In this document: positions 21,401 to 57,731 of the stretch, in pieces
Numbering within the stretch: the first letter of the stretch is position 1
Layout: every line of letters begins with the position of its first letter
Assembly (NCBI GenBank): GCA_964247055.1
Contig: OZ176055.1
Span: 7,502,001-7,566,000, forward strand
Direction: 5' to 3'
From: Paragordius varius
Taxonomy: Eukaryota; Animalia; Nematomorpha
Length of the DNA stretch: 64,000 bases
Made by a program: the position numbers and the translations under genes
The notes under the pieces: generated by a model
Seen by the model: the letters and a program-made list of their open reading frames with translations, nothing else
Database searches by the model: none
Told to the model about the DNA's origin: nothing

Positions 21401-21656
21401 CCAATGTTAATTACAGTTAGAAGAAACCCAATAAAAGTCATAAGATTTGGGGCAAGCCATGATGGTAAGAACTTTAAAATTAAAATAGTATTTACTTGCA
21501 CAACCCTATCCCAAATAGGATTTGTTAGATAAACGCTTAAAGGTGAACTATCCACTGAGACATACTACAATAAATTAGGTTAATTTAAACTTTGTATTTG
21601 GTAAATCCCTCTAAATGCTTTGGTTTGAGATAATTGTATTTGAGGATATGCTTCAT
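18460..21656 (-). CDS. SELENOI: Ethanolaminephosphotransferase 1 (SELENOI/EPT1 family, CDP-alcohol phosphatidyltransferase)
   Basis: Exons 21656-21591, 21564-21496, 21471-21276, 21201-21151, 20802-20591, 20358-20238, 20126-20078, 19908-19692, 19286-19044, 18588-18460. Motifs [40 protein letters not shown] (CDP-alcohol phosphotransferase signature), HWEKYITGVFYLPWAYDASQ, AQMS and HIHFGIRIVKQLS match the recalled human SELENOI sequence. Confidence 0.93.
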
Positions 21657-21747
21657 AAAAAATTTATAGTAAGAAAATGCAATAAAATATTTTAACACAT
21701 AGCAAAATCAGCATTCAATCGACATTGTCCAACATTCCTAAACTCAT
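21657..21747. promoter_or_regulatory. Putative minimal bidirectional promoter between SELENOI (-) and AGPAT (+)
   Basis: Only 91 nt separate the two predicted ATGs. Contains CAGCATT (21709), CGACATT (21720) and CAACATT (21730). Promoter function is inferred from position only. Confidence 0.5.
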
Positions 21748-22410
21748 ATGCGTGTCGAGGAGATTATAAAATTATTTTTGGACTGGTTCAATACTTGGCA
21801 AAATGCTTTTATGGCTATTTTTTTCTTACTCTTTACGATTTTTCTTTGGACCCTTTTTGCATTTCTACAACAATCCCGAAAAAAACGTCATAGCAAAGAT
21901 AGTCAAGATAATCCCATATCAAGACACTATAAACCACAAAACTTTCAACCGAATCACAATCAATCCCTTTTATTGCGATCTTTTGATGTATTCTTGTATT
22001 ATGTCAAAACTATGATATATGTTTCCGTTATATTTAACGTAAGTTTAGTTTGGCCCTTTTTTCTCCTTATGGGCCATGGTAAACGCAATCCACGAAATCA
22101 AAAGTATTTTTTTCTATAAAACATTTTAGATATGTCTATGATTTGTATTACAGAGTCTGCAAGATATTTCGTATAAAGTTTGAGGTTAGAGATTATGAAA
22201 ATTTGGAAAAATACGATTCCTACGTCATTGTCAGTAATCATCAAAGTTCATTGGATCTTTTATGTACGTCATTAAATACATATTTTTAAATAATTAATTC
22301 CATTATAATCCCCTTGATTGTAAAATACATGTGTCATTTTCCGATTTATGACCCTTTTTTAAAAAATATATCAATCTTAACTTTTTTTAATTAACCATAA
22401 TATTAAATTT

Positions 22411-22450
<40 letters not shown>

Positions 22451-25400
22451 AATAATGTACTACAGGAAAAAAATAATAAAAAATGATAAAAATAATATTT
22501 TTACTAATTTTGGTTCATTATCTACGAATGATTATAAATTAAAAATGGGCGCTTTTTAAACGATTGGAAAAGTGAATAAATAATTTAGTGTCTAGCTTGT
22601 TGATTAAAAAACTCTAATCGAAGGATCCTTAAGGGGGGTCTACCCTATTATAAAATCTCAAATTTTTTTGTATTTAGCTCAATCAACAGTTTGGCCCCAA
22701 AATTGTACAACTATTGCTAAACGAGAAGTTATTTATTTAGGTCCATTTGGTGCTTTGAGTTATGTCACCGGGGTCGTTTATATTGACCGAAAAAATTTTG
22801 AATCAGCTAAACGGACGCTCGACACTCTAGGTAATCGATTGAAACCTGAAAAGGTATATATTTTCAGTATTAAATTTTATTTTTAATTTAGTTTTTATTT
22901 TTAAAAAAATATTAGCTTATATATCAATTCAGTAAATTTTAATAAAACTTTTTATTATACCGCTTTTCTTGTAATTCTATCATTTTGTGTGTGCTGGCAA
23001 AGATTTTACTCCTAATTTTTTAACACATTTTAAAGAATATACGTTGCGTAAATAACATTTAGTAAGCCAAAATTGTGTATTTTATGATTTAAAACTAAGG
23101 CTATGATAAAAATATTAATATAATTTAACTGTTAAAAAAAATTTATACATTAATTGTATTACAATCTGTAAATTAATTCCTTTTTTTAGCTTAAAGTTTG
23201 GATTTTTCCGGAAGGAACTCGTAACCATGGCACGGGTATTTTGCCTTTCAAAAAAGGAGCTTTCCATCTTGCTGTTCAGGCTCAAGTTATTTTTTCTTTT
23301 TATTTCATATACGTATTTTACAAGTTAAAAAATCTTTTTTCTTCTAACCTCAAATTACATGCATAATAGGTTCCGATTTGTCCCGTGGTGTTTTCATCGT
23401 ATTACCCTTTTTATTGTCGTTACGAAAAACGATTTAAACGAGGTAAGTTATATGAGGTGTTTAATATAATTAGAATTTTTAGTTACGTTTTTCGATCTCT
23501 TTTTCAATAAAAAGCGACGAAAAATATGGAATTATAAATTTACAATAAATATAGAATGACAAAAATGAGTTGTTTATATATCATTTCAAATCGCATTAAT
23601 AATTTCAAAACAATATAAATGTAACAACACCATTACAACCTTAAAGCATTATAACTAGCGATAGTTTTTGCCCAAATTTTTTAATTAGCATAAAAATAGA
23701 TCCTAAAATCCAATATCTTTGGCCTTTTTTAGTTAAAATCATGAAGATATAACATTAAATTTTCTTATTATTCACTAAATAGTTTCCAAGCAGTCTTATT
23801 ATGCAAATTTTAATAAAAATATTGCTAAACATTTGAGATTTTTGATATGATAATTATAATCACTTTTATATTTACAAATACTTTTACTTGCATAAAATAT
23901 CCTTTAAACCATTTCCCATATTTTTTTACATGAATAATATATTTATATGGTCACTTTGGAGTTTGCCTTTATTTTTAAGTAAAGATCTAAGCATTTTTTA
24001 TTCATTAAAGGGAAAGTTATTGTAACTTGCTTACCACCCATCCCCACGGCCGGTTTAACCTACGATGATGTGGAACAATTAAGTCACAAGGTTCGTCATT
24101 TAATGGTCCGGGCTTTTATGGAAAGTAGTGCTAATGCATACCCAAGCTATTTCGGCCTAGGGACTCCATTAAGAACTCGTTGGGATAAATTGGAATCCGA
24201 ATATGAGGAAAGATTGATTGAAAAATTGCGTAAGTTTGTTTGCTTTATTTTGGTTTTTTTGGTCACTAAGAAAAAAGAAGTTTTGACAAAATTGATTTAA
24301 ATTTTTGTTGGTGGTATTAAGTTGGATTTGATCGGTAAAGGCGAATAACAGATAAATACTTAGTTCAGGTATAAAAATATAAAAATTGCAATTTAAACCC
24401 AATGATGCGCTCGATCGCACCCTCTGCAAAAAAGCCATAAAGACCACGTTCAAAACTGAAGGGTATCCCTAACTCGACGAGTGTTAATTGTATAATTAGG
24501 AATTAGATGTAAAAAATTTAAAAAACTTTATTTTCAAAATTTTCTTTATTGACATTGATTTTTGATTGTTCCTGTTAAGACTGATTTGTTTGGTTCTTTT
24601 TTATTTTTATTTTGTTATAATATATATTTTCATTTATAGTAATAAGGATAAGTTTCTGAATTAATAAACGGTCAGACCTGTTATTTGCGGTTAAAACCTA
24701 ACTCTAGTTGGTGATTTATTTGAAAATAGTCTATTATTTATGAGTTCAAAGGTCAGTATTTTTTATTTATTTTAAAACTAAACTGTCTTTTATCTTCATG
24801 GTCCTTAGATCATAGAATTGATGAATTTATGGAAAGTTTTGATGATACCAATATTACACAAAACATGCCATCAGCCACAGGTATGATGAATGATGATATA
24901 AAAAATAATGATACTAAAAATCAAGGCGATACACCCAATTCAAACCAATCAGTGCGATCAGATATGAAGGCCCGTCATCAATATAATGAGGAGTCTAGCG
25001 ATGTTTTTACCTTTGATACCCATGACATGATTCGTGATTTTATAAATTATAACTCAGACACGGCCTCTGATTATAAAAATTCCACTTCCCTATACGATGG
25101 AAATAGCAAAAATGTTCAAAATATCGTTGTCACAAAAGATGTAAAATCATCCCAAAAAAATAATAGCGACATTGGAGCACCACAAAATACTTGTCAAGCA
25201 GGAAATAATGTTTGCAGTAAAAACACATCACCTAAGCGATTATCTCCAACTACCCCTAAAATAAAACCGTTCATAAGTTCGACGGGAGATCCGGTCATAG
25301 ATAAATTATTTGATCAGGAGAGATATCAAGAAGGTATACAAGTATAAACGGGTATTTTTTAAACATTTAATTAAAGTCGCATGATTGTAAAAAATTCTCC

Positions 25401-27447
25401 AGTATTGCACAGAAAAAGCTCTAAAAATGCTATAAAAATTGTATACAAATATGTTTTTATGAACTAATATTTACGTTTAGCGATTTTATTAGCTTTTATT
25501 TCATTTTATAGGTGATTTGATCTATGCGCAAACGTTTTATACTACTTCAATAAAATTAACTTACTAAGTATCAGCTTAAAAGATGTGAAGACATAAGCAA
25601 ATAGCTAAAGATTTTATATTAATTATAAAAAATGTTGCGATAAAAACTTTTAATTCATAGTCTTTTTTTTGTTTCTTATATTAAAACTTTCCTCATTAAA
25701 TAATATGTGACCTGCAAATATACACAGTCACCAAAAAAATATTTTTATAGAATATATTGTATCATGATTTTTAAAGTGCTTTTGGTTTTGGGCCTTACGA
25801 ATCATTTAAAAAAAATACACTTTTGTGCTAAATACCTTTTATCGAAAAATGGTATTTGCACACATTATACTAGATAAAAACATTTTTATAACTAACTTTA
25901 TTCCAAAATCATTAAAAAATATCATAACTTATAATTAAAAAAACAAAACAATGTTTGTAGTAATTTTAAAATAGACGTAGACTCCGAAAAGCACCTCCCT
26001 CTCTAAAATAGGCTTGTTTTCTCAAAATAAACGCAAAAATGCCGAGATTGGGCGATGACAATTTTTAATATATGCTAGATTACAAAGTGTCCACAAAATA
26101 TATCGATGATATATAATATATATATTTTGATGTGAAAATGTATTATAATTTAAAAATGTTATTCACACTTTTATAGTAAAGGCATATCAGAAATTGGCAA
26201 AATTTGCTCACATTTTCTAAAATAAATTTGTAGTGATAGCTTAATGCCTAATTCCGAAAAATATCTCTAAAATATATAAACCACATAAAAACGCAAAGCA
26301 ATAATTTTTTAAAAATATTACTTTATAGATGTAGGCAAAGCCCCAATTTTTTTCGCGTTTCTTTTGCCTAGATCTCGTAAAATAAACGCATGCCCAGATT
26401 GCGCGTTAAATATTTTAAAATTTGAAATCAACTAAAATTTTTTAAAATGCCTTTTTTCAAAAATTTAATTTTTAGCAAATTTTGTTGAAATGCTTCATAC
26501 TTATTTGAGGAATGAAAGAAACAGTAAACCGCTTCAAATTGATTTAAAGGTTTGTTTGCGTTCCAATTATGGTGTATTTTTTTAAAAAACACATTTTATT
26601 TTTAACATAAATTTGAAAACAAATATTTTCAAGATTCTGTGATGGAAATGTTCCGCATCATGAAAATACATAGAAGAGTGTTACAATATTCTAAAGCGTT
26701 TTTATACCGTCCATCATGCTTCAAAATAGTATGAAGTAATATATAAATTTTTTTATCGCGAATCGGCATTTGAGTTTATTTTAAGCGTACTAGCCCATCT
26801 TATAAAAGCGAAAAAATTTGGGATTTTCGGAGCCCATATATAAAAATTCAAATTTATTAAAAATTTTGTTTTAGATTTAGTTATTGATATTTTTTGAAAT
26901 GAAGTTTTTAGCTTTCACTAAAAAAATTTTGTTTAACAAAATGTGCGCAAATTTTGCCATTTTCTATATGGGGCATTTACTACAAAAGTGGTTACAACTT
27001 TTTATATCAGCTTGGGGGCGAAACTAAAAACACCATGACAATCCTGATGATTTTCATATCAGAATATTTATATTTCATTTAAATTTTATTAGAATTCCCG
27101 ATCTTGGACGCAAAAAAAAATTTTTGAAAAAATTCTTACTTAATTTTAAATTTATATGGCAAAATTTTGTTGGAGCATACTTTATGCAATTTTGAAGCAT
27201 ATAAAATCAAAATGTTATATTCACATATATATCTATTTTTTCCTATTTTGCATGATTTAGGAAAAGGATTTTGCGGTAATTTTTTCTTTGTCGCATTTTC
27301 ATCCTAATTTAATTTAAATGTAAAGTTTTTTATTTCTTTTTAGGCATAACAGATCCTGTTACACAATTCCTGGACAAAATTGTGCAAAAAATCCAAAATC
27401 ACTCCCCTTCATCTTCGCCAAACAAACCCTCGATGAAAAATACATAA
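21748..27447 (+). CDS. AGPAT: 1-acyl-sn-glycerol-3-phosphate acyltransferase (AGPAT1/2, PlsC family) with long C-terminal extension
   Basis: Exons 21748-22103, 22130-22263, 22678-22853, 23190-23285, 23370-23442, 24011-24229, 24809-25333 and a probable last exon at 27344-27447 (alternative 25512-25567). Motifs [51 protein letters not shown]. Confidence 0.93.
25721..27075. mobile_element. Long foldback element family B copy 2 (~1.35 kb, in last AGPAT intron)
   Basis: Left arm AAGTGCTTTGGTTTTGGGCCTTACG and right arm GGGGGCGAAACTAAAAACACC, with internal blocks shared with the other family B copies in mirror orientation. Boundaries approximate. Confidence 0.7.
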
Positions 27448-28123
27448 AATATGTTTTTTTTTCTCTATATACTTAAAAATACTATACCATGTGATGCGAA
27501 AAAAAACTTACTTTCATAATTCTCAATGCCAAATTGTTGAGAGATAAATTATGCATAAAAAAGTGTTTTAGATTATTATAAAAGATTTTTATAGAAGGTC
27601 GAAAAAAATCAATAGCGGTTTAAAATTATCAATGTCATACCACCCTCATACTCTTAATAATGATCAATAACTCAAAAATGTACTGCAATTATAAAATCAA
27701 CAATAAAACTGTATTAAAAATATATTCATATACAAAATTTGTTTCCCATTTTTTTTCCTAAATGAAATTTCTTATATTCTAATTATGCAAAATCGAATCA
27801 AGCGAATTTTTTTAGCATAAGTTTGCGCCCGCTTAATTAGTCATTAGCATAATTTTTTTCCATTCTATTAAATTTTTAGTACCCTTACGTTGTGTGATTT
27901 GCATAATTCATTTCATATTTTTAAACGATACTATCACAAACTTTATTTGTCTAAACATAATAATGATTGTGTAATCTAAAAGATGTATTATGAATCTATG
28001 TGCGCATCAATAAAAAAAATGTAAAAATAGATTTACAAAAAATATATAATAAATTTTTATTACACATACTGCAATTTTTATTTCATGTTAAAAATATTTT
28101 TTATATTGGTTTGCTTAAGGTAA

Positions 28124-29718
28124 TTATGTAACTTCTTGTTTTCGTTTCAATGGATTCGTATTATATAAATGCAAGTAGTGTTGACTTTTAGCTATGGAGG
28201 GCTGCTCATCTCCCCAACCCCGGTCCCAATATATGGCTAAATTGAATTGAGCCTGGGGGTGTCCAGCATCAGCTGATTTGGTATAATATTCTTTGGCCTG
28301 TAAAATCAAAAAAAAATTCAATTATGTGATAAAAAAGTTATTAGTACCGTTTCGGTTTCATACAAAATTTGTTTGGGAAAAAAATAGTTTTGGTCTAAAA
28401 AGTTTTAAGAATAACTGTGTACGGTTTCAATGTTTTATTTCAAAAAAATTTGAATGCGGTTCGATTTTTTTAAAATAAAATGGCACTGATTGTTCGACTT
28501 TCTTAATTTTACGGATAGCTTTTTATTGTGATATGATGTGAGTTACAAAAGTATAAATATACAGTTTATACTTTAATATTAAAGGGAAAAATTTATTGTA
28601 TCCGGACTTGTGAATGCTTTAACACTCGCCTGCCGAGGGCTAGTGTGGGAAAATTGCGTAGTTTCGGTGTTCAAACCCTGGCACACAGTGCAAGAGTCCG
28701 CCCTATTTTTTAAAGGATAGCCTATTTTTTTGATATAATGTGAGTTACAAAGGCGTATAATTAAACTATACAAATATGTTATCTGTTGGGGGGGTTAATT
28801 TAAATGAAATAAAAAATATAAATAAACTTTATATTTTACCAAAAATTTTGAAACTAAGGTTCCAAAAAAGACTAATGATCTAGTTCCACGAAAACGGTAA
28901 ACAAAGTAAATCTGTGAAATACCCCGTAAAGTTAATTTTTAGGTTTAAAAGATGAGAGGGTAAAGTTATCGGTGCTAAATATAATTTTATCATAATTCTA
29001 ATAGAAAAAAAAAACAAACTAATTAGTATACTATACACTATGATATGTGGTATACACTGTCCTCAAAATATTTGGTATAAAGCCACCTATTGCTTGATAG
29101 GGTAATACTTTTAATTGTGGTAAGCTAAGGAAATAAACTCCATAACATGTTTTCTATTTAATATTATAGAAGGTGTTTTCTGCCAAAAAATTTGTGAATA
29201 TCAAATTAAACTTATCATATTTACTTTTTTAAGATCCTTGGAAACTCCGAGACCCAACTCATACATAAGTGCTAAATTAAAATAGGCCTTTTCATTGCCT
29301 AATTGACTGGAAGACTTGATCCAAGTCAACGCCTGGGAATATTCTTCTTTTTTGAGGAAAGCCAACCCAATAGCATGATTCGTTTGAGATTCTGAAATAC
29401 GTAAAGACTCGAAAATGGAATCCTTAAAACTCGCGTCCGAAGATGTTGGTTCAAAAACTTTTGTGGAAGTTGGATCAAAAAAATTAGAATTACGCTCATA
29501 TGTTTTGTTATTTTTAAAGAAATTAGATCTACTCGTATTAAATATATATTTTACCCTTCATCTCGTTTTTCAGCATCATCGTCATTATATTTAGATTTTA
29601 GGTCATTGTATGTTGCATCAGTTGAATTAGTATGCCTCAATACATCTTGTATGCGCTGACAAAACCCTAAAATATAAATTTAAAAACCCCTTGATAGGGA
29701 TTGAGTAAATCTCCACAT
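28124..29718 (-). CDS. Sel1-like/TPR repeat protein, DELE1-like (206 aa)
   Basis: Exons 29718-29688, 29666-29555, 29528-29225, 28297-28124 total 621 nt. Starts MWRFTQSLSRG (human DELE1 starts MWRL). Sel1 repeats ALTWIKSSSQLGNEKAYFNLALMYELGLGVSKDLKKAKEYYTKSADAGHPQAQFNLAIYWDRG. The Sel1 call is strong; DELE1 orthology is tentative. Confidence 0.75.
28601..28703. ncRNA. Candidate structured intronic RNA or repeat (unidentified)
   Basis: 53% GC over 28601-28700 inside an AT-rich intron. Closing stem CGGACT (28603-28608)/AGTCCG (28695-28700). I recognised no known ncRNA family. Confidence 0.25.
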
Positions 29719-29767
29719 GGTTTTGCTGTTTAAATGCTGGTATGCTTTGAAATGTTGAGCGAAAAGC
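29719..29767. promoter_or_regulatory. Putative minimal bidirectional promoter between DELE1-like (-) and COQ2 (+)
   Basis: 49 nt between ATGs. Contains AATGCTG (29733) and AATGTTG (29751), i.e. CAGCATT and CAACATT on the minus strand. Confidence 0.5.
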
Positions 29768-32673
29768 ATGACAGTTTTGGTAATCGGGAGAAAAGTTTTA
29801 TCGTTAAATTTTCAAAATAAAACCGCTATCTATGGTTTGAAGTTTTTTACTACACATGTAAAAAAATTCAATAATTACCTACAACTTATTAGGTTTGACA
29901 AGCCTATCGGTATCAAAAAATCTCTATATGTAATTAGGAACGTGGTTAGTATTTTGGCCTGGGATGTGGTCATTGACTCTTGCAACTCATATTCAAAATA
30001 ACATAGTAAATACAGACATAAATATGGACAAAATACTATTAACTTTTCCGGATCCCAAATTATTTTTGTATTTTTCTCTCGGGAGCTTTCTAATGAGAAA
30101 TTCGGGGTGTATTATCAATGATATGTTTGACAAACGATATGATCGATATGTTAAAAGAACTGAGAATAGACCACTGGCTGCAAACAGACTTACGAAATTT
30201 AATGCATTAACTTTTTTAGGATTAAATTTATCGGCAGCTCTTCTTATTTTACTACAACTTAACAATCTCACCATGCTTTTAGGTATATTTAGCTTTTAAA
30301 AAATTCACTTTATATATTCAGGCGTATTAGCTTTGATTCCGACTATTACCTATCCTTTGTCTAAAAGATTCTTCCCGTGGCCTCAATTACATTTAGGTTT
30401 ATATCTGTTTGCATTATTTTGTTTTCGTCCATAATCCCTTATTTTTTATATTAAATTCTGGCATTCATTAATGTTTCGATATATTTTTAATTTATGACGT
30501 GTTGATACATTTGTCATTTTTCAATTTTATCACATTGCAACGAATTTCAATCAAATTTATTTTGTTTTTCTTTTTTATATAAAGGCATAGTGTTTAACTG
30601 GGGTTCCCTCATGGGTTATTCAGCCGTATTAAACAGCCTAATACCTGCCCTACCCATTGCACTTTTATATGGTGGAAGTATTGCATGGACTCTGGTTTAT
30701 GATACTGTTTACGCTCATCAGGTAATTAATATATAAATTATTAAATTATACAGCCACATTATTGATTATATAGGTATTTTATGTATAAATGTTAATTTTT
30801 TAACCTATTTACAATACCAATATAACATAGTTTAGCTGCTAACTTTATACAAAAAAATCATATTTTATAATGCGTAAGTAACCAATATACACAGTGTACA
30901 CAAAAAATTATCCGGAATATTCCGATAGTATTAGGAATTTAATGGTGCTTTTGGTTTGGCTCTTACGAAGGATTTAATAAAGGTGTTTCAATTTTGTTCT
31001 AAGTGCTCCATATAGGAAAATGGCATTTAACCACCTTTTTGTAAATATTTTTTTGATGAAGGCTTAATGCTTCATTCCACAATATCACTAAAATTATCAT
31101 AAACAATTTATGAAAAGTAAAACAATATTTTTATTATATTTTAATTTTTAGATGTGGGCTCTAAAAGTTCCTAATTTTTTTGCTCTTTTAAAACGGGCTA
31201 GTTCTTGTAAAATAAAGGCAAAAATGTTGAAATGGCGCGATAAAAATTTAATATACTAAATTTTGACACCAAAAAAATTTTTTTAAAAATGCGTACTTTA
31301 TACAAAAATTTAATTTTGGGCCAAATTTTATTGAAGCGTAGTTCATCCTTTTTTAGGCATGATGAAACCGACACAAAAACTATATGTTATAAAATTCTAT
31401 ATTTTTTTGCTGAACATTTCTATCACCTTATAATTTTAATCAATATATTCGTTTGTCTTCAAATTTATGTCAAATGAAATTTTTTTTATATAAATTCACC
31501 AAAATTTAAAAGTAAACGAACCTTTAAATTTAAATTCTGATGGAGAAATGCGGTAGAAATGTTCAGCATCATTAAATTATATAGAAAAAGTGTTTTTACA
31601 ATATCTAAAAGCGTTTTTATAATTCCAATCATACCAAAAATAGTAGGAAGTCACGCTTCAATAAAATTTTGCTAAAAATTGAATTTTTCTAAAAGCATGC
31701 ATTTAAAAACTATTTTTTTCGTCAAAATTTAGCATATATCAAAACTCTTATTGCGAAAATCTGGCATTTTGCGTTTATTTGTAAAAAACTAGCCCGTTTT
31801 AGAAGAGCAAGAAATTAGGGGCTTTAGAGCCCACATCTAAATATCAAAATATTATAAATTGTTTTGCTTTTTATAAGTAGTTAGTGATATATTTTAGTCA
31901 ATGAAGCATTTAGCTTTCGACAAAAAAAAATTATTACAAAAAATGTGGTTATTTGCCATTTTCTTATATGGAGCACTTAAAAACAAAAGTGAAATATATC
32001 ACTCGTAAGGCCAAACCAAAAGCACCTTGATACTGATACAATTTTCTATCAAAATATACTTATTTTATCAAGATATTTTTTCGAACACCAATTTTAGAAA
32101 AGTAAGAAAAAAAATTTGTTCATTGCATAGTTTTTTTATAAAATATGACTTTGTTTAAAAATGATTATGTTTATGTAGAAAATATCTAAAAAAACATACT
32201 CGATCAATATTATCATGAGGCATAAATTTATGATCGTGTGCTACATATTCAAAAACTCAATATAGAGAGATTTATTATGGGGGGAAAGGGTACTGTCATC
32301 AAAAATTCTATTTTTTATATGATAATACTAGGATAAAATGTATGATATGCAATTGGGATTACATTCAACGGCTCTTTACTTTGCTCGTGCACCCAAAAGA
32401 TTTTTATACTTGTGTGCTATCTTTTCTAATGCCTGTTTTGCGGGGATAGGACATACGTTTTCTTACCATTTTAATGAACATATATCAACCTTACTCCATT
32501 TTCATCCCTTATATTATATATTTATTGCTCTAAATACAATATATATGACATGGGCCATAAAATGTGTCGATTTGAATGACCCGGTCTCGTGTGGTCAACA
32601 TTTTAAACGCCATAATGTGTGTGGAATACTTACTGCCCTGGCATTTATTACTGGGAATGCGTCTTTTTTTTAA
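29768..32673 (+). CDS. COQ2: 4-hydroxybenzoate polyprenyltransferase, mitochondrial (UbiA family)
   Basis: Exons 29768-29909, 29938-30282, 30322-30396, 30585-30721, 32332-32673. Motifs YLQLIRFDKPIGTWLVFWPG, LMRNSGCIINDMFDKRYDRYVKRTENRPLA, YPLSKRFFPWPQ, FNWG, WTLVYDTVYAHQDK, STALYF. Confidence 0.95.
30890..32090. mobile_element. Long foldback element family B copy 3 (~1.2 kb, in COQ2 intron 4)
   Basis: GGTGCTTTTGGTTTGGCTCTTACG (30944) and CGTAAGGCCAAACCAAAAGCACC (~32003-32025). Mirror blocks include GTGCTCCATATAGGAAAATGGCA vs TGCCATTTTCTTATATGGAGCAC and GATGTGGGCTCTAAA vs TTTAGAGCCCACATC. Confidence 0.8.
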
Positions 32674-32881
32674 ATAAGCTTATATTGATTTTTTAATATT
32701 TTATAACTGTCATTATTTCTACATGCGTAGATATTATTGTATATAATTTTAAATACAGAGTTGAAAATTTTGTATGTAATAATATTTTGTTAAAATAGCA
32801 TGTAAAACAATTCTTAAATAATTAAAAGTCCTTGAAAATTAAAATGGTAAAAAACATGGATAATTTGACAAATATTTATTT

Positions 32882-33256
32882 TTATAACCATGGAATAGAT
32901 ATGGGCGCTGGATTTTGTAAATATGACATAACAACAGCAAATATAGACAACCTTAAGATTAATTTAAAATATACATAAAATTGCTAACAATCTGTTTGGT
33001 ATCATCAGAAGTTTTAGCATTTGCAAAACTAATAAAGGCACAATAGAGGGCAATCCAAGAGCTCCATTTAATCTACATTCATTATATGTCTAACTCTCAT
33101 CATCAATCCAAACATGCTAAATATTAAGCCTAAAATATTCATATAATCATGTATGGGATCTTCTGATCTAGCATATGGCCCTGAATCCAAATTATATTTA
33201 AACCTGCGATAATAAAAAAACTACTTGTGAATTTTATACTTTTTTGGTTCGTTCAT
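32882..33256 (-). CDS. WDR83OS: Asterix / PAT complex subunit PAT10 (102 aa)
   Basis: Exons 33256-33225, 33203-33095, 33072-32975, 32951-32882 total 309 nt and translate to [102 protein letters not shown]. This is colinear with recalled human WDR83OS ([36 protein letters not shown]...[16 protein letters not shown]). Absent from the ORF track. Confidence 0.95.
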
Positions 33257-34249
33257 TTTTCATATGGTTGTTGTACTACCACATTTTTGCAAAAATATAT
33301 TATTATTTTTAACATTTTGATTCGAATTGGGGTATCTATATGCCCCAAACAATATTTAAATCGATATTTTAAACAAAATTATAGAAAGAAACGGTTCATT
33401 ATTCTATTAATAATTATATAAATAAACCAAAATATCAAAATAAATTAGTTTTGAAAAAAAGTTTCGTATCAAAGTACTTCGAGGAAAATTACAACATCTT
33501 TGCAAATATCATGTTTATTTGATTCTTAGTCCGAAATTAAGGGTACTTTTTATTAAATGACATTTAACATTAATCTAAACAGAAAAAGTGGTATATTTTG
33601 CATTAATTTATATTTAGTTATGCATATATAATGTTGGCTAAATTTTACCTGGTTTGAACAAATATTTTTCAAAATTTAGGTTCATTAATGTTGTAAAAAT
33701 GGAAACTTTTGCCGTGGTTTTAATATATTCCATATTGTTAAACAACACTGGGGTATAAAAAACCCCCATTTAAATCGAAGGAATAAACTGAATGTGTTGT
33801 ATCTAAGTCCGAACTAAAATAATTATTAGCTCTAATCGCATTTTCTCTATTTTTTGGGACAAATAATTAACTTTGTATTCAATGTTTTACCAAGTATATA
33901 CTATAGGTTTAGTGTTGAGAACGCTTTGAGAAAATAATTAAACAAGTTTTTATGACGAATAAAATATTCATCAATATGTAAATTTTTCAGTGTTATCCAA
34001 ATTTTGAGTAGTTTTCCTCTAATAGCATCATTAAAAGTAACGTAAAATATCTTTGATTTTTGGAAAAATTATGCGCATAATGGCCTTTTAAGCTCAATGA
34101 TTGTATAAATGTTAAAAAGTCTTATCTCAATTTAGCGGCCAATAACTCTTTACATTTCACATTTTTCTTAATTTTAGATAATTACTTTATAACCTCGAAA
34201 CTTCTAATTTTGCTGCAATTATTTATCACATAGTTTTTTATGTTAAATG

Positions 34250-35615: not shown

Positions 35616-36223
35616 TTATTGAAGGATTACATTTTATTTAGCAAATAACATAAAGAAAATAAACATAGACAAATAAAATAAATAAAAAATCATTTGACAC
35701 TTCATCGTTTCGGGGCATAACCCTAGAACGATTTTAACTATCATAAAAACTATATAATATATTGGGACAGATTAAAAGTATATATTCCTTAGCCCTTTAG
35801 GCTTATGATAAAAAAAATCTTTGGGGTCCAACACATTCATTCTAGTCCTTCGATTCTAACTATGGTCGTTTATCTAGCTGTATCAAATTCAAATACACGG
35901 AATTTAAACCATTACAAAAGTTTGCACCTGTATAACATTGATTGACCGAAATATAAAAAAGATTCCTTAAAACTGGATATTATTTATATGGATAAACTGG
36001 AGGTAAATCTCTAGCCAACATAACATGAGCATATGTAAAAATAATGAAAAATAAACCACTCTTTGTTTATATTAATACACTTCGATTCAAATTGGTGTAT
36101 AAAAATACCCAGACTATATTTAAGTTGATATTTTAAAAATGCTACTGAAAGAAACAGTAACAATTTGAATTTATCCTAATAAAATTATATACTTAAGTTA
36201 AAATATATGAATAAAAGTTAGTT

Positions 36224-38383: not shown

Positions 38384-38418
<35 letters not shown>

Positions 38419-41801: not shown

Positions 41802-41926
41802 TTTTTCGAATATTTCTCAATCTGTCAGTCAATGATTAAGACTACACTCAATGATGACAATGGTTGGTTGTGCTGCTTTATACGAATCTATTAGCCAAAC
41901 ACCTTAAAATGCATACGGTTAATATT

Positions 41927-43127: not shown

Positions 43128-43149
43128 TTATAAATTTTCCACTTACAAC

Positions 43150-44520: not shown

Positions 44521-44810
44521 TATATTTTATTGTTAAATATATGAAAAATATTTTTTATACAATAAAAATCATGCTTTCTGGAACGGTTAAAACTACGGTT
44601 CCGTTCCAATATAATGATTGTGGATCCATTCTATATTTCCAAATTTATTTATTTTGCATCCCATAGATTACACCTCCTTTGGCCCAACTAAATTTAACAA
44701 AGGTATGCTTTTAATTAAATCTTAAATATAAATAAATATCCATAAAAAGATATTAAATTTAATAAAGATTTTGATTCAAAATTTGCAATTTCTCTGTTAT
44801 TAATCATGAG

Positions 44811-47800: not shown

Positions 47801-48420
47801 TAGATCTTTTTGTCCATGATAACTTCTTAATTTATGTTTTAATTAATATTTTTGTGAATGGATGTGTACAGCAAGTCCAAAGTATGATCTTATATCAAAG
47901 AAGGAATGAAAAACATGTATAGTAATCGTCTTAATAACTATCATAATATTCCGAAGGCCATTACGAAATCCCTTTGCAAAGATTTATTGGACAGCACATG
48001 GTCAAATTAGTCGAAACTCAGTTTTTTGACGATATTTTAAATCAGCTTATGTTAGCTTTGGATAAAATGATGCATTCATAAAAGTAGGATGAATGACAAT
48101 AAACTTTTATTTTTGTTAAGGTGAGGGATGGAGATAAATATAATAAAAACGATATACGTGATCCTTGGGATGAAAAAATATTTTGGCAAAAAATAAGTGT
48201 TTTTACTTTTGATGTTTTATTTTTATTTAATTTTATTCTATTCAGTGGTGTGCCACTTATTCAAAATGGAAATTTTTCATTCGTCAGCATTTGGTTTACA
48301 TCCAACATAACCAAAAAAGAAGGCCTGAACGATATAGAGATTAGATTATTTACATACGTGTATGATATGTTCCAAATTATTAATGTGCATCAGGATTTTA
48401 GAATAACTACAGATACGGAG
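44811..48420 (+). CDS. CUB-domain-like exons of an incompletely resolved gene
   Basis: Joining 44811-44948, 48121-48185 and 48246-48420 gives MVIKPP...FFIILDLFRLQISANVSNSYAK|VRDGDK...EKIFC|GVPLIQNGNFSFVSIWFTSNITKKEG, resembling the CUB pattern (YxxVxDG, FCG, GN, IxFxSD). The 5' and 3' ends are not found and one junction requires a GC donor. Confidence 0.4.
47360..47830 (-). mobile_element. RTE-clade LINE 3' fragment (frameshifted)
   Basis: KSISLQNKLKLYKVRIRPTLAYACETL and NRRGRLRLTWLNLVQQDL are typical post-RT motifs of RTE/BovB-like elements, split over two frames (ORFs 47542..47817 and 47268..47627). Confidence 0.8.
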
Positions 48421-48471
48421 GTAGTGTATGTATAATAATTTAACCAATAAAATATATGAAAAATAGTATAC

Positions 48472-48663
48472 CAGGGCTTCGGAGCGGAAGAAGAACCCGA
48501 TTTTAGAATTTTAGCAGGAACCAGTTCTGGATTGGAACTATACTTCTCCAAGAGCTACCCTGGTTGATGTGTCCAAATTTTTAGGAGTCAACCCGGGTTC
48601 CTTTTTAAATTTTTAGGAATCAGGGCGGTTCCGGTTACATTTTTGACCGAGTTTGAAGCCCTG
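48472..48663. mobile_element. Small hAT-like MITE
   Basis: TIR CAGGGCTTC/GAAGCCCTG with internal GGAACC-type repeats; TSD not clear. Confidence 0.6.
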
Positions 48664-51036
48664 ATAATTACTATCAGTAGAATTTTACTATAACTATTAC
48701 TTAAAATATATAATAATGGCGCAAATATTATATGATTTAAGGCTCAATAAAATAAATTTCTACCATATATATTCGATTTATCATTATTTCTATACTATAT
48801 TTAGTTTGTGGTACGAATTTTAAAGCCATTAAGTTCTTGTTCCATATTCTATATAAATATAATGAATGGGTATAGAAGTATTGAATCTTATCCCGAAATT
48901 GTTGGGGTTAGTATATTATTAATAAACTAATTTTACTTATATTATATATTGGTTATAAAACTATTTTGATCTTATATATATATCTATAATTTTTTAGCTC
49001 GAAATAAATCAAATCCATAACATATTAAAATTAAAACTTCTGAAATTAAAAAATGATACAATCTTTAATGAAACGCTCATGCACGAAGATATGCTAATTG
49101 AACGGATCTTTTGTTTAAAGACGACTTATTGGCAAACTTGGCATCAATCCAATTTATCACGTTCGATTCCAACTCAAACCTTATTTAACTTAAACGAAAG
49201 CCAAACTTATATATCATCAACTATGGTTGTTGTTCACAAACTTGCTTATCGGTGCTTTTAAATTCAAAGATGCTACAAATTTTTAATAATTTTTCATATA
49301 CCCCATAATTATGTAATGATATACTTATTTATAAATTAACACTTCATGAGCTTTTTCAATATTTAATTATCAAAAATATATTTTTAACATTGGCCAAAGC
49401 TTTCTTTAGCCTTTTAAACGCATGGTCAAATTTTTTTTAAAAAAATTTTACCGCCATTTTTTTTCTATTTAATCGCTAAAGAGGCAAATAAATGTATATC
49501 GTTGAAAAATATAATTAATTAACTTTGGCTTTAAAATTACAATTCACCCGAAAATATTTTAATATCAGCTGTTAATTTCAATCGTGCTTTGGAGCTATCC
49601 GAATTCGAGTCTCTAGAAAGTTAACACTGTAAAAATTCCTAGTTTTTTATTATATACAAGATAGGTAAGATAATAAAATTTCAACCAAAACGATTTCTTG
49701 ACAGTAATTTGATTACTTCTTTAAACTGGAGAAATCTATTCCAAAATGTCATCGTGTACAAATAAATGAACATGTAATGAAGTCTTAATATTTTATTATT
49801 AATCTTCTATATATATTTTTAACATTTGATATCCATTAAAAGCAAAAAAGTACAGCTTTATGATCACACTTACGTCTAAAACTGTGTCTAACCTAATTTA
49901 AAAAATAAACAGATATGCGCGATCATTGCATGTGATTTAAAATTTTTGAGTTAAAAATGGTTCTTTTTATATATTCTGTTCTAATTTTAATTTGAAAATT
50001 TTATTTTACAGAGGGAAAAGAATTGATCGTTAGAAGTTTATAGAGAAAAAAGTTTTTTTATTGGTATTAATTTTAATTAGTGCAAATATGCGTGCTTTCA
50101 TGGCAATTTTTACATTTCAAATCAATCAGTGGTGACTCTTTTGGTCTCATAAATTCGATACACACAAATATTAATGTTAAAATATTTTTGTAAAAAATTA
50201 ATAGCTTCATGTCAAAAACATTTGGAGGAAAAAAATTAATATATGTAGGGAAGCTTGGTTGGAAATTTGTTAAGGTTGGCTAAAAAGAGTTGTTCAAAAA
50301 CTTACCTGCTCAACAATAAAATATCTGAATGTAATGAATTGGCATTCATTAAATATGCCCCGATTAAGTTAATATAATAAGACTGTTGATATAGAAATAC
50401 ATATGTATAATTATAGATTGTGTCAAATTTAGGGTCAAAAATGCAGTTTCTTTAGGATGGAAAAACTCAGTTCAAAAACCCAAAATATAAGGGATTATTT
50501 GTAATAAAAATAATCTCAAAAATTAATTTAAGCATTCAACTTTTTAAAATAATTAGAATCAAAAGAGCTAAACCTTAGCAAACAGATTATAGCACATGAA
50601 TTATAAAGCTTGTGTTTTAATAAGCTTCGACATCTATAAGGAAAAGCGCTTGAAATTCATTTTTAAAATAAATTCAAAATTTAAAGTAATAATTTGTATG
50701 TGGGCATCTTAACTATGAAAAATTCCATTTAACCATGATTTATGTCTAAATACGCTGTAGCTATTTAACTTTTTGAATGAAAAAAGATGTATGTAACTGG
50801 TCGGGTAGAGAATGAAACTTAACAATTATTTTTTTATTAAATTAGATTACAAAACATAGTTTTTATAAGTTATAAAGCTTGCATACCTATTTTTACATTT
50901 AAGGTAAAATTCAGAATTTTGTAGGAATTCTATGTATATGGCTCATAGTTTATTTTTCCAATTTATAAACGAGTTATTCACATGTTTTATGTCCAAGTTA
51001 GACTATGCAGAAACTTAGCCTTTGTAAAGCAAAATG

Positions 51037-51792
51037 CAGTGGCGTACCGATGGGGGGCAAGGGGGTGCATCATGCCCCGGGCGCCGTTATTTAGGGGCGC
51101 CTAAATGATCATTTTATTAAATTTAAATTATTCAAAAATAATAACAACTTTCAAGTAAGATTTTTCATGAATTTACGTAATAATCCCTAAATGAATATAA
51201 CAATTATATAAATGAGATCAAGAGCAAACATTATGCAAATAGCAACTTTCAAGTAGGTATTCCCTTCAACATGTGCAAACTTATTTTTGCACTTAACACT
51301 TGGATGCAATTCATTTTTAGACCTTCGATTCAAATTGGGGTAGTTGGCCCTGGCCTGTTTATATTAATTCCTCAAAAAACTATCAATGGAAATGAAACCA
51401 TAGAAAGTTTGCACTATTATAACCAATGAACCAAAATATTGATATAACAAATTTTAAAGTAAAACCCAAAGATAAAGAATGCATTTACTACTTGGAGAGA
51501 GGAAATAAGATTGATAAATCCAGGAATTGATTCTGCTCTAGAAGCTTATATATCGGAAAAGGATCGCCGGCGAATTTTACATCGAATATTGGCCTGCATG
51601 AAATTTCTAATCACCCAAAATTCCCTTTTCGAGGACATGTTGAAATTATAATGTATATCTATGGTGTTTAAGTTGCAACGTTTGTCTTTTTTTTCTAAAT
51701 TTTATTGGCTTTCAGAAAGAGGAGGGGGGGGGGGGGGGGGGCGTTATAAGAGTTTTATGCCCCGGGCGCCGCAAATGCTCGGTACGTCACTG
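51037..51792 (+). mobile_element. Non-autonomous hAT (Tip100-like) deletion derivative, 756 bp
   Basis: TIR CAGTGGCGTACCGA/TCGGTACGTCACTG and 8-bp TSD GCAAAATG/ACAAAATG. Subterminal GCCCCGGGCGCCG at both ends. Internal frameshifted KFLITQN/PFRGH transposase remnant near 51600-51640. Confidence 0.85.
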
Positions 51793-52267
51793 ACAAAATG
51801 ATATTTTAGTTAAATTTCCTTAATTTTTATTATTAATAAAATATGAGTTTGCATTCTACACGCTTTACTTTCCAAATGTCGTAGCTATAAAATAAGAGCT
51901 TACAAATTTACCTATTTTCTCATACCTATGATTTCAAAAGTTTTAACAAATATTAAAATAATTTTCAGGATCAAATGTCGGCCAAAAATTAGTATTTTTG
52001 ATTTATTTTTCTTATATGGAACTTGTTTCCAAAAATAATTTTAGGATTCTGAAATGTCTGGATATTCTATCCTAAATTTGACACTCATATATATATATAT
52101 ATATATATAACCGTAACGAAATAAAAATTGAGGAAAACGTAACAAAACAAAAATATATGGAATTTGTCTACGTGTTTTTTCTTAGAAGTAAATTTTACTG
52201 TATATAACCGAAAATGACAAATTATGATTGCTTTGTGAAAAACACCATCATTGAACATGATTATTTT

Positions 52268-55200
52268 TTATCCATATGAGTGTTGATGAGTGGAAGCACC
52301 ACTTAGGCTTGAGAGAGTCGTTATTTGATAATCGGAATTTACCCATAAGGGAGATTCGAAAGAATTTAATCGCATTCGAAAACTATTAGTGGCTTCGGAT
52401 TGGTTGCTTGATTGATTTTCCTCTCGACGCATCACTCGGTATGTCACGAAACCCAAAAGAGTGATAGCAAATGCCACACCTTTGTATGACAAAAATAAAC
52501 TTACAAACATTCCACCCTGTTTAATTTATATTAATTAAATATTTACCAATTATTATGGTAATTTTGAACCAGGAATTCAGGGATTTTTTTAAGGGTCCGA
52601 CTCCTTTGTATCTTTGTAACACCTCGCTACCTATTACATCATCATTGTCAGCTTGATTTATATTATTTAACGTTTTTTTTGGAGTTTGTGAATAGTTTGT
52701 TGCCATGATATTTGACGATGTTTGCGATAATTGCATCCCAGTTGTGTTGTATAAAATGCTTAATGAATGATGATTTGCTTGTGTGGAGAAGTCGATATGA
52801 TTTACAGAATGTAAGGTTCGTGCCATTTTTCGCAAAATATTAGTATCTTTTTTTGTGGTTTTTGATGGGGACGTTACGTTAGTTAATTTATTTTTGATTT
52901 GTTTGATGAAATCATTTAATGCAATCCCTTTTGAATTAATAGGAGAATGACATCTAAGCTATTGGGAAAATAAAAATTCATGTGCCTTTGTAAACGAAAA
53001 AATTTCAATTATTATCATACATCTACTTAAAAATTAGCATATGGTTGTACAATAGCGTATGGCATAAAACAATGTTAGTCCATAAAAGAATAAAAAAATA
53101 TTTTTTTAAAAAAAATAACAACCCTAGTAGTATATACATGTATCCATATATCCGCTTGTTTTTTAAAAAAAATGTTTATTCTTTTGTGGACTAATATTGT
53201 TTTATGCCATACGCTACTGTAGGAATTTCCAAAAGCGTTACGCTGGTTTGTTTTCCAATATGTTTATTTTATTCAAATGTTAGAACGTTTGTAAAAAAAA
53301 GGTATTATATAAAATATTACCAGTAATGTTTTACTAAAAACTTTTTACATTTTTGATTCATCAAATATAAGTAATACTCGATTAAACTTTGAAATACTCA
53401 GGGTTTTGGTAGTCATTGAATAATAATTGATTAATTCGATTAATGGTTCAATCCTGTCCTTTTTACAATCCCAGATGTTGCCCTTCAAATTTATTTGATT
53501 GAGTTTTGGAAACATTTGTAAAAAATATCTTGGTAGACTTGTTAAATGGTTATCTTTCAAATCGATCCTTTGAAGTTTGGGAAATGAAACATGTTCATTG
53601 CCAGATAAGAACAAATGTCGAACAATTTTGGGACTTGCTGATAAGTACAGGTGCTATAAATATATTAATACCCCTTTAAGTAGTAATGGATGGGTAAGGT
53701 GACCAGACGTCCCGCTTTTGGCGGGACAGTCCCGCTTTTTCACACTTTGGCCCGCGTCCCGCTGCGTTTTAGAAATATCCCGCTTTTTCACGATTATATA
53801 AAATTAAATTTTTTAAATACATTAAAATTTTTTATAAAAAATTTATTTTTCGTTGGGTATGTAGCGCATATAACACACAACGCTATTCAAACAGCTGCTG
53901 ATTTGTTATCCCTAGATGTGGAAAATGTAGTTGTTAAGGTATATTCCTATTTTTATATACACGGTGCGCGTTGAAACGCCTAAGAAATTCTGTGCAAATG
54001 CAGAAGTTCAATATTAAAAAATGCTTGATATTGTAAAACTCGTTGGTTTGCTCTTCTGCCAGCTATCGAAAGAATTTTTAAAAATGATCTTTTAAAATCC
54101 TAATTTTTTATCACAGGACAAATGTCCTACAACTTTGGAAAAGTTTTTTGAAAGTGATTCTTCAATATGGTTAGAGTTCCTACATAATCAAGCTTTTCTC
54201 TTTCATGTTAAATTGATAGAAAGTGACAAAACTTCGGCCATCGAAGTAGCCAATGAAGTTAACCTAAAATTCCAATGTCAAGAAAGGTCATAAAATAATT
54301 TTATACCAGTAACCATCCGCAATATTATAAATAATTTAAAAAAACAAGGCTTAATAAAACGCCAAGATATCCTGTACCATTAAAAATGTTTCATACAAAC
54401 TGTAAAGATTATTGGAAGACTGGACGGTGCAATTTAATGAAATTGATCATTTTCATTGGATAACATTAAAACCAGAATTTAATTGGTGCCATGTTCAAAA
54501 ATCATTTCTGCATCTCCCAAAAATTCCCAAAAAGTAACCTTTCAGAAAATATCTTTTTTCTAAAGTATCATTAGTTATAAAATATATTAATAATGAAAAA
54601 CTTAAATTATGGACAACAGAAAAAAATACAGTAGAAAAGAAATAGTTAGAAATATTTCATCATTTTGAAACAAACTATGTTCCATACAATATTTTAAAAA
54701 TTGTAGAATTACAATTATCTTTACGTGGAACCAACGCTGCTACTGAGCGCGTTTTTTCCACAGTAAATCAGATGTGGACATCGGAAAAGTCAAATTTAAA
54801 TGTTGAAACTTTACCATTTTTTCTGTCAAATATAATTTGACAAATTCTTGTGAAATCTACTATAAAATGATGACAATCTGCTAAAACGCATTCACTCAAA
54901 TAAAAAATATACCAAGGAATTAAATATTTTTTTATATTTATCATGTATTTGTGTTAAAATTAAAAATAAATAAATACTGCAATAAATTTTTTGTATAAAA
55001 ATTTTTGGTTGTACCACCTCATAACCCCCCCCCTCTCAGATTTGTCCCGCTTTTTCCTTCAAAAAATCTGGTCACCTTATGGATGGGTAATGGCAAAATC
55101 CAGAAAGTTTAAAATAAAAAATAAATGAAAAGTTAAAGCTAAGATTTATAAAAAGTATGATTTATGCTGGCCTATGTTTTTATTGGTCCGATCACAGTAG

Positions 55201-57731
55201 TGTATGGGAAAAATATCAAATGTTGATATTAAACATTTCTTTCATATCTAACATTACTTTATTAATTAAATATATATACTATTTCTAATTAAGTTTTGGA
55301 ACCCTATCTAAAATACTACCTCTAAATTTTTGGAAACTGCTTGAAAGATATTTGCATTAGAGGACATCGTTTTTGTAAGAAGAGACGAGTTTGCAATATT
55401 TTTGTTCATTTTATAACCTAGGCGATCAACAAAAGTATATGGGGTGGCGCCTGATATCTCCTCCATCTCATCATCATAATATATTTCTAAGGTTATACCA
55501 GAATCATATAGTTTATCTTTTAAGTCGTGCATAGGATCAATCCATTGTTGACCAATGTTTGTCATTTTAAGCGTCTGTAAATTGTGTAAATGGCCTAGAA
55601 AATTGGTTTCTGTTACTTGAAAAGTATTGTTTGATAGCGTAAGGTGTGATAGATTAGGAAAGCAAGAAAATTGATTATCATACAACAAGCTGATAAGATT
55701 TTGCGCTAAATTAAGGGTTGACAAATTGTAATGGATGTATTCTTTTCCATTTGGTTTCCATATTTCATAAATTAAATTTTTCACAAGTTGCAGGGTATTA
55801 AGCGTAGGGTAATTTGTTAATACCTTTGGCAAATCTATAATTGGTCCAATAATGTTGGCAGCTAAATCTAAAGACTTTAAGGATGCCGGTAAACTGGTGG
55901 GAAACTAAGAATATATTACTTTTCTTATTATATATTAATTTTAAATTATTAGTTCTCTTATTGTTATTATTTTCGAAAAGATTTTATTGAAATGGGGTAA
56001 ACACATCTAAATTAACAAATGTATTAGTTAATAAAATATATGGGATAAATGAACATATACTATTCGGAGTTTGTTTGCAGATAATTTTAGCGTTTCTAAT
56101 CGTCCATTAAACGCAAATGATGCATCAATATTTTGAATACCATTGTTGGTTAGGATTATTGTTTTAAGATAAGGATAAGCTAAGAAACCACTTTTTTCTA
56201 GTATATAATAAATTTAACATATTTATGAGTTGACGATTTTTAGGACAGAATTGATCAATTTCAATTAATAAAGTTCTATTATTTAAAATTAATTATGGTT
56301 GACAAAACTCATTTCCAATATGGTTGTATTAATATTTCTGTAATATAATTGATCTTTTATATTATGTGTCTGAGTGTTATGATAAGGTTTGATATGGAGT
56401 AATAAACACTTCATTGCCGCGCAAAATCCTCAAAATGACGGAATTATTAGATATATTATAAATAACACTACCGATATACATTCGCTTATTTTCACGATTT
56501 TTTTAGTATTAACCATGTGAGGTCTAAAAATATACCTAAATTTTAATATTTTTTTAAATATTTAATTAAGCTCTAACTGTGGACTAAAAAGTTTGATAAC
56601 AGCAAAATCAGAAAACAACAACTTAAATTTTAGTTAAGAATATAATTGCAACAAGTTGCCTTCCCGGAATCGGGTTTCATATGGTTTGAGTTTGCAATAC
56701 TAAAGTTAAAACAAATCGTCTCGCTGCATGCGTGTATATAAACGGGCACAAAAAACAAAAGCACCATAATCCGGATATATTTTCCTATCAGAAGCTATAT
56801 ATTTAATCAAAATATTTATTGTATTCCTCGATTTTATAGATTGAGTATGCAATTAAAATCTGCATATTTTTGCCTACTTGAAAAAATAATCAAAGTATTG
56901 TATTTTAGTTATTTTACCGAAAACATTGATATCGTTATGCCCTAAGTTAAGCATCACCAATGTTGGGGCTTTTAATGTGGGAATTCGATTTAAAAAATTA
57001 TGTGATAAATCCAAAATTCTCAAAGCGGTAAACTCGGTTTCCAATCTGAATGTATTTAGTTTATTTTTTGCCAATTTAATATTATTTAATTGTGATAGTC
57101 GACCAAACGAATATGGATTTACATCTGATATATTATTGCGATTTAAATTTAAATATCTGGAATCAAATAAAAATATAACTTTAAATGTTGCAAATTGAAT
57201 GTACCGTTCTCTAATACATTGATTTCATTATCTTCTAATGAAATGGTAGCTAGATTTTTCATATTAGCAAAGATGCTGAATGGAAAATCCATAATTTTAT
57301 TATTGGAAACATCTAATGTTGTTAATTGCAAGTTCCCAAGTCCTATTTGTAAGATTTGTCAAGGATATAATATACCTGAAAGATTTCGTACTTCATTATT
57401 TATAATTTTTAACCATTTCAATGCCTTGAATGATGTTATTGATGAGAATATTTGTAAATTTGGCTCCAAAACATGATTGTTCAATAATTTTATAACTTTG
57501 GCATTGTTCGAAAAAATTTTCACAATAGTAAAATTATTAAATTTAAAATGATTTAATTCGACTACCGAATAAATATCTACATGTTATTTCCAATAAACTT
57601 GATATATTATTAAGGGCATTGGCATTAACTTCTCTTCCGTCGCAAACTAAATTTTCTCCACGGCACACGCATTTAAATGGACAAGAATATGAGATTTGAA
57701 ATAAAAGGGAGCATGCAACAAGAATTTTCAT
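52268..57731 (-). CDS. Single-pass leucine-rich-repeat transmembrane protein (signal peptide, LRRNT, multiple LRRs, LRRCT, TM, short tail; no TIR)
   Basis: Exons 57731-57581 (or 57599), 57561-57376, 57342-57180, 57156-56918, 56197-56061, 55904-55320, 53653-53378, 52958-52547, optional 52516-52505, then 52479-52268. Motifs CPFKCVCRGENLVC, repeated LxxLxLxxNxI, GNIWDC...LRCHSP, and TM ITIIIGVAFAITLLGFVTY followed by RVMRR. Confidence 0.9.
53695..55079 (+). mobile_element. hAT (Blackjack-like) element with decayed transposase, 1385 bp, in LRR-gene intron
   Basis: TIR TAAGGTGACCAGA/TCTGGTCACCTTA and a perfect 8-bp TSD TGGATGGG (53687-53694, 55080-55087). Subterminal GTCCCGC repeats. Remnants DVENVVVKVYSYF, TRWFALLPAIERI and GTNAATERVFSTVNQMW (hAT dimerisation motif) contain frameshifts and stops. 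Confidence 0.92.

Follow-up and report, generated by a model that had tools for sequence, protein, structure and literature searches.

Introduction

Canonical splicing of introns of 15–30 nucleotides (nt) occurs in ciliates and in chlorarachniophyte nucleomorphs, protists whose introns are almost all tiny. By September 2026, published introns below 30 nt came from only two animal lineages, the dicyemids and the myxobolids, in which they had been ascribed to parasitic genome compaction; a 2026 survey of 51 animal genomes gives introns below 30 base pairs (bp) for myxobolid myxozoans and Dicyema only, and leaves hairworms unmentioned (PMC13644364). The genome of Dicyema japonicum measures 67.5 megabases (Mb), of which 49% is repeats, and its introns average 38 bp (PMC6736024). 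The present study concerns ten segments of 21–28 nt that begin with GT, end in AG and lie in six genes of a hairworm, Paragordius varius (Nematomorpha), where they are very probably spliceosomal introns. The genes belong to a stretch of 64,000 nt (contig OZ176055.1 of assembly GCA_964247055.1, positions 7,502,001 to 7,566,000 of the forward strand), hereafter called the window, in which position 1 is the first letter. A preliminary description of the window had named the dicyemids as the animals with comparable introns; this remains correct, and the list was incomplete, the myxobolids having been added in 2026 by the survey cited above (PMC13644364).

Among hairworms, Gordionus has a published genome of 288 Mb, with a guanine plus cytosine (G+C) content of 26.93%, 63.8% repeats and a BUSCO score of 71.6%. 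The word intron is absent both from that genome paper and from a preprint comparing four hairworm genomes, and a full-text literature search for hairworm or Nematomorpha together with intron returned nothing relevant.

Results

Short segments and their reading frames

The window has a G+C content of 27.4% and contains no Ns. Direct reading of the sequence and its frames showed a GT at the 5′ end, an AG at the 3′ end and a length of 21–28 nt for every one of the ten segments, so that the coordinates, ends and lengths in the preliminary description, which had placed ten such segments in six genes, were all borne out. Removal joins the two flanking frames into one open frame at all ten sites. The further claim that all but the 24-nt segment must be removed to keep the frame was confirmed as well, since nine of the ten, when retained, break the frame or meet a stop within a few codons, the exception (21472-21495) being in frame and stop-free. 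In this small set (n = 10), three lengths are divisible by three, and two of these three segments contain a stop.

The homology across the junctions, likewise observed directly, bears on the earlier statement that removal mostly restores gap-free alignment. Removal does so for both SELENOI segments, the first segment of a Sel1/DELE1-like gene, the single COQ2 segment and the second and third Asterix segments; the agreement is weaker for the first AGPAT segment (AGPAT-1), the second Sel1 segment (Sel1-2), the first Asterix segment (Asterix-1) and the third intron of a leucine-rich repeat gene (LRR-3). As judged from the sequence, homology fixes the exact boundaries of at least five segments, namely the 26- and 24-nt segments of SELENOI, the 21-nt segment of the Sel1/DELE1-like gene and the 22- and 23-nt segments of Asterix, and the four weaker ones are probable introns (Table 1).

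Several details fix individual junctions. The 23-nt length of Asterix intron 3 is the sole GT-AG option in the right frame. In COQ2, the opening residue of exon 2 aligns with position 16 of the TIGR01474 profile, where the match begins, and the sole alternative to the 28-nt intron, one of 40 nt, would remove four aligned residues. Profile searches with SELENOI exons 1-2, with COQ2 exon 1 and with the tail of AGPAT exon 1 gave no match, and an Rfam scan of the window gave none.

Comparison with Gordionus

In an exhaustive search with the SELENOI piece, the best match was CAK9304507.1 of Gordionus sp. m RMFG-2023 (Nematomorpha), with 73% identity and 96 query residues aligned to 88, the next match being 56% identical; Gordionus was the closest relative found by this search, and CAK9304507.1 clusters with the RefSeq protein XP_065322316.1. 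The SELENOI exon structure was solved exactly at the Gordionus locus (L001), and the window gene was then modelled against it. The resulting model is intact over 450 residues and 65.5% identical to its orthologue, and all nine introns share both codon and phase with their Gordionus counterparts, a positional orthology that is directly observed. Exon 2 comprises 69 nt in both species. When the 24-nt segment is read through, it produces a gap of exactly eight residues against the solved cholinephosphotransferase structure PDB 8urt, and the same gap against Gordionus.

The Sel1-repeat gene upstream in L001 is syntenic and is the orthologue of the DELE1-like gene of the window. Exon 1 is 31 nt long and starts with MWRF in both species, and the motif QRIQD directly follows intron 1 in both. 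Intron 2 of the Gordionus gene (50 nt, phase 2) comes after the same acidic stretch, in a poorly conserved region, and the 927-nt intron 3 of the window agrees in codon and phase with the last Gordionus intron, which is 41 nt long. Overall, three of the ten segments coincide exactly with annotated Gordionus introns, and a fourth has equal phase at an approximately matching place.

Intron lengths and splice signals

The length census covers the 29 introns modelled in six genes of this one window, with the ambiguous LRR intron 1 counted as 22 nt. Eleven of the 29 have 28 nt or fewer; introns of 33 and 39 nt follow, and after a gap the remainder range from 74 nt upwards. All 11 of the shortest introns fall within the first three of their gene (Fisher p = 0.001). 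The median across the 29 introns is 111 nt, well above the value below 30 nt that would mark a genome-wide regime of the kind ascribed to Dicyemida and Myxobolidae. The preliminary list of ten short introns missed three others: the 39-nt intron of COQ2, the 33-nt intron of the LRR gene, and the LRR intron of ambiguous length.

In all three deep DNA runs, word depth in the long introns reaches 10^3 to 10^5, compared with about 300 elsewhere, and the long introns therefore carry high-copy repeats. Depth inside the 1610-nt COQ2 intron is 10^3 to 4x10^4, and that in 28494-28690, inside the 927-nt Sel1 intron, is about 45,000, compared with about 300 nearby.

The G+C content of the ten short introns is 18.8%, against 32.2% in the flanking exons. 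The 5′ site consists of GT followed by A (six introns) or T (four), with A or T at positions +3 to +8 and no further consensus; at the 3′ end, where TAG (six), AAG (two) and CAG (two) occur, only the AG is fixed. Splice sites reduced in this way are also described in the survey of animal genomes (PMC13644364). The bodies are rich in T and A without a distinct pyrimidine tract, ten introns being too few for a sequence logo.

Independent DNA

Reads were compared over positions 28100-34000, which hold six of the ten segments, with four runs from three samples (X1, X4, X5 and X6), all of DNA; X4, X5 and X6 derive from other individuals. Presence in independent DNA was directly observed for five of the six segments, through which contigs of these runs pass (Table 1); Asterix intron 2 is crossed by contigs of X1, X4 and X6, and among the contigs listed none fully spans 29529-29554 (Sel1 intron 2). 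Among the indels listed for the DNA runs, none lies at any of the six segments. The preliminary description had named assembly indels as one finding that would overturn it; because independent DNA contigs from three samples carry the segments, the frameshifts at those seen in contigs are not assembly errors.

One of these samples (S3, runs X4 and X5) is a few percent divergent from the window sequence. Two of its single-nucleotide polymorphisms (SNPs) lie inside the 21-nt Sel1 intron 1 and leave its length unchanged, a 3-nt deletion at 30294 falls inside the 39-nt COQ2 intron, and the sole listed SNP in an Asterix exon (33128) is at the third position of a glycine codon and synonymous by our reading.

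Two further observations concern the samples themselves. Over 28100-33300, runs X4 and X5, a second sample with the same species label, are about 3-4% different from the window (for example, 12 differences in 273 letters), a divergence that would be high within a single species and points to strongly structured populations or a cryptic species. Run X6, labelled as a different organism, contains identical hairworm DNA at 32859-33160 at a depth of about 2-3; its source may be a host, or an environmental sample, in which the worm was present.

Neighbouring genes and further features

The coordinates of genes, introns and contigs are collected in Table 1.

Table 1. Genes, introns and independent DNA contigs in the window, with intron lengths in Gordionus; lengths in nt, ~ approximate.
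Feature	Position	Strand	Length in window	Phase	Length in Gordionus	Remarks
SELENOI/EPT1 gene	18460..21656	-				10 exons, 450 amino acids, nine GT-AG introns; spliced model open throughout
SELENOI intron 1	21565..21590	-	26	0	42	sole frame-keeping GT-AG option; position and phase of Gordionus intron 1 (XP_065322316.1)
SELENOI intron 2	21472..21495	-	24	0	43	in frame without stop; orthologous to Gordionus intron 2
SELENOI intron 3			74		44	
SELENOI intron 4			348		17561	
SELENOI intron 5			232		431	
SELENOI intron 6			111		517	
SELENOI intron 7			169		280	
SELENOI intron 8			405		234	
SELENOI intron 9			455		236	
AGPAT gene	21748..24300 (3′ end not fixed)	+				Pfam Acyltransferase match; introns 5′ to 3′: 26, ~414, ~336, 84, ~520 (505-535)
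AGPAT intron 1 (probable)	22104..22129	+	26	2		restores frame; alternatives share donor
Sel1/DELE1-like gene	28124..29718	-				introns 21, 26, 927
Sel1/DELE1-like intron 1	29667..29687	-	21	1	40	codon and phase of intron 1 in syntenic Gordionus Sel1 gene
Sel1/DELE1-like intron 2 (probable)	29529..29554	-	26	2		frame needs removal; contains stop
Sel1/DELE1-like intron 3	28298-29224	-	927			
COQ2 gene	29768..32673	+				introns 28, 39, 188, 1610
COQ2 intron 1	29910..29937	+	28	1		spliced N-terminus gap-free across junction against three UbiA proteins (P0001-P0003)
COQ2 39-nt intron	30283-30321	+	39			
COQ2 1610-nt intron	30722-32331	+	1610			
Asterix gene						introns 5′ to 3′: 21, 22, 23
Asterix intron 1 (probable)	33204..33224	-	21	2		restores frame from start codon; contains stop
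Asterix intron 2	33073..33094	-	22	0		Pfam ASTER position 45 is the last in exon 2, position 46 the first in exon 3
Asterix intron 3	32952..32974	-	23	2		exon 3 ends at ASTER position 77, split codon 78, exon 4 starts at 79
LRR gene						introns 5′ to 3′: 19/22/37 (ambiguous), 33, 23, ~720, ~156
LRR-gene intron 2	57343..57375	-	33			sole in-frame GT-AG join between flanking repeats; in-frame stop; not in preliminary description
LRR-gene intron 3 (probable)	57157..57179	-	23	2		removal yields canonical LxxLxLxxNxI unit; 22-24-residue repeat register kept
Contigs of X1	32859-33317; 29891-30318					
Contigs of X4	29535-29857; 29870-30054; 32862-33103					
Contigs of X5, X6	32859-33077; 33069-33160					

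SELENOI intron 4 occupies 17.5 kilobases (kb) in Gordionus (L001:6509-24069) and 348 nt in the window (20803-21150). The GenBank model CAK9304507.1 ends at this intron (129 amino acids), while the RefSeq model crosses it (412 amino acids).

Both in the window and in Gordionus (L001:1-6000), SELENOI has the Sel1 gene as its neighbour on the same strand. Within the region 21748-29770 of the window, AGPAT stands between the two, head to head with SELENOI. COQ2 is not adjacent to the Sel1 gene in L001, and orthologues of AGPAT, COQ2, Asterix and the LRR gene were not found at L001, the only Gordionus locus at which they were looked for. Translation of the Sel1/DELE1-like gene probably starts at the second ATG (29718, MWRF...), as in the Gordionus orthologue; if this ATG is used, a spacer of 49 nt separates it from the COQ2 start at 29768, instead of overlapping start codons.

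The second short intron of COQ2 (30283-30321, 39 nt) is one of those absent from the preliminary list. LRR intron 1 (57562-57598) is needed for the frame, and its length is ambiguous, as 19, 22 and 37 nt all keep the frame. High-copy stretches occur at 28494-28690, 30858-32236 and 33222-33812, inside long introns and just upstream of Asterix.

Discussion

In the current study, ten very short segments in six hairworm genes were examined in their frames, in their homology and in independent DNA. We consider it highly probable, from sequence comparison, that they are ordinary U2-type GT-AG spliceosomal introns, shrunk to a tight class of about 21–28 nt in this hairworm lineage. The core of the preliminary description, that introns of 21–28 nt coexist with kb-long ones in one animal genome, is thereby supported, as the same genes appear to hold long introns too, one of 927 nt in the Sel1/DELE1-like gene and one of 1610 nt in COQ2. 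On this explanation, ancestral intron positions would have been kept while lengths fell to about half of the 40–50 nt of the compared orthologous introns in Gordionus, and the tiny class would be restricted to the initial introns of each gene, between one and three in number, the downstream introns being of 74–1610 nt and repeat-bearing. Recognition would most likely proceed by intron definition, the signals being a 5′ site cut down to GT and one A or T, a body rich in A and T, and a terminal AG that is mostly TAG, and a failure to remove nine of the ten would shift the frame or give a stop within a few codons. A more specific proposal is that, within the gordiid hairworms, the lower bound on intron length dropped from about 42 nt, as in Gordionus, to about 23 nt here, in promoter-proximal introns only, the others swelling with repeats; we put this forward tentatively and hold it to be somewhat doubtful. 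If true, such a drop would imply that the manner in which the spliceosome spans the distance from 5′ site to branch point has changed specifically in this lineage.

Several observations weigh against the segments being spliceosomal introns of this size. Both strands of the window were scanned for GT...AG pairs with a spacing of 18–35 nt whose removal would connect open frames of 20–40 codons or more, with eight dinucleotide pairs as controls, and frame-joining GT...AG pairs were not enriched over the control pairs. Because frame joining by GT...AG thus does not exceed the control level, the observation exceeds chance through homology alone, and the introns in unconserved regions (Sel1-2, Asterix-1 and AGPAT-1) stand on weaker grounds. 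Only five of the ten segments contain a yTrAy-like motif, which lies 7–16 nt before their 3′ end. The RNA-labelled runs of the same species (X8-X12) contained none of the sampled words, and database searches with COQ2 exon 2, the full Gordionus SELENOI and its N-terminal fragment found no transcript-derived protein of this species, nor any other hairworm sequence. Excision from RNA, the branch point used and any change of the spliceosome are matters that we infer from DNA. The 24-nt SELENOI segment, being in frame and stop-free, could moreover be a coding, lineage-specific insertion of eight residues; this is quite improbable, given its GT-AG ends, its location exactly at the 43-nt Gordionus intron between exons of equal length, and the gap that it opens against the solved homologue.

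Among the explanations that differ from that of introns of 21–28 nt, the one closest to it accepts the introns as real and makes several of them longer, so that the class below 30 nt would have fewer than ten members. In-frame GT-AG or GC-AG alternatives do exist at AGPAT-1 (50 and 86 nt), Asterix-1 (36, 57 and 72 nt) and LRR-3 (26 or 35 nt), and the flanks of these sites lie outside or at the edge of profile matches, the N-terminus of Asterix, with the site of intron 1, falling outside the Pfam match. This is nevertheless unlikely as a general account, since no alternative works for at least five of the sites, where profile coordinates or the Gordionus orthologue set the boundaries, and since the COQ2 alternative comes at the cost of aligned residues. 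Residues 5-43 of AGPAT exon 2 match PlsC-type profiles, which speaks against an intron of 86 nt and only weakly against one of 50 nt, and the repeat register of the LRR gene favours 23 nt.

A loss of frame on retention, as seen for nine segments, would also be expected of assembly or sequencing indels, or of frameshifting insertions in decaying pseudogenes; this reading is scarcely credible in view of the contigs from three samples that hold segments, the GT-AG ends at all ten sites, the three exact coincidences and the fourth approximate one with Gordionus introns, the spliced SELENOI that is intact over its entire length, and the synonymous nature of the listed Asterix exon SNP. The size of the segments further resembles that of the elements skipped by translational bypassing (phage T4 gene 60, yeast mitochondrial byp) and of the internal eliminated sequences (IESs) lost by somatic DNA excision. 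Bypassing is unlikely because at none of the ten sites do the take-off and landing codons match, and DNA excision is unlikely because the boundaries show microhomology of 0–2 nt, that is, no flanking direct repeats, and because no excised form occurs among the entries listed for the four DNA runs. As GT-AG ends and orthology to ordinary introns favour splicing over either, we regard such non-spliceosomal skipping as very improbable.

If the ten segments are spliceosomal introns, hairworms would be the third animal lineage with introns below 30 nt, and an ecdysozoan one, and the two-class, 5′-biased length distribution would be new. The presence of tiny introns beside repeat-loaded, kb-long ones would indicate that minimal intron size is separable from genome compaction, and the window species and Gordionus would form a close species pair in which to study how short a spliceosomal substrate can become, and why. 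Common gene finders have a default minimum intron length above such introns. Hairworm genomes are said to have lost many universal genes, and introns below the default minimum could contribute to the low BUSCO values of hairworms (71.6% in Gordionus).

Concerning the known systems, the segments resemble the short canonical introns of ciliates (Paramecium, Stentor) and chlorarachniophyte nucleomorphs, whose retention usually leads to a premature stop. In Dicyema, introns below 30 nt likewise occur in a bilaterian parasite with a repeat-rich genome; the short introns of Dicyema are found throughout, whereas two length classes are present within single genes of the window. The myxobolids (Henneguya, Thelohanellus and Myxobolus) share with the window GT-AG introns of about 20–30 nt at conserved positions in an animal parasite, a 5′ site reduced to GT plus A, and the apparent lack of a clear polypyrimidine tract; unlike the hairworm, they are cnidarians with a median of 22–27 nt over all introns and genomes of about 20–200 Mb (Henneguya 74.9 Mb) (PMC13644364). 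In the window, which is that of an ecdysozoan, only 11 of the 29 introns have 28 nt or fewer, these lie in the 5′ part of genes, and the others extend to kb lengths with repeats. Positions, phases and synteny are shared with Gordionus sp. m RMFG-2023 (L001), which also has A/T-rich introns starting with GTA or GTT; its short introns, however, measure 40–50 nt (42, 43 and 44; 40, 50, 40 and 41), approximately the usual animal minimum, and those of the window are roughly half as long.

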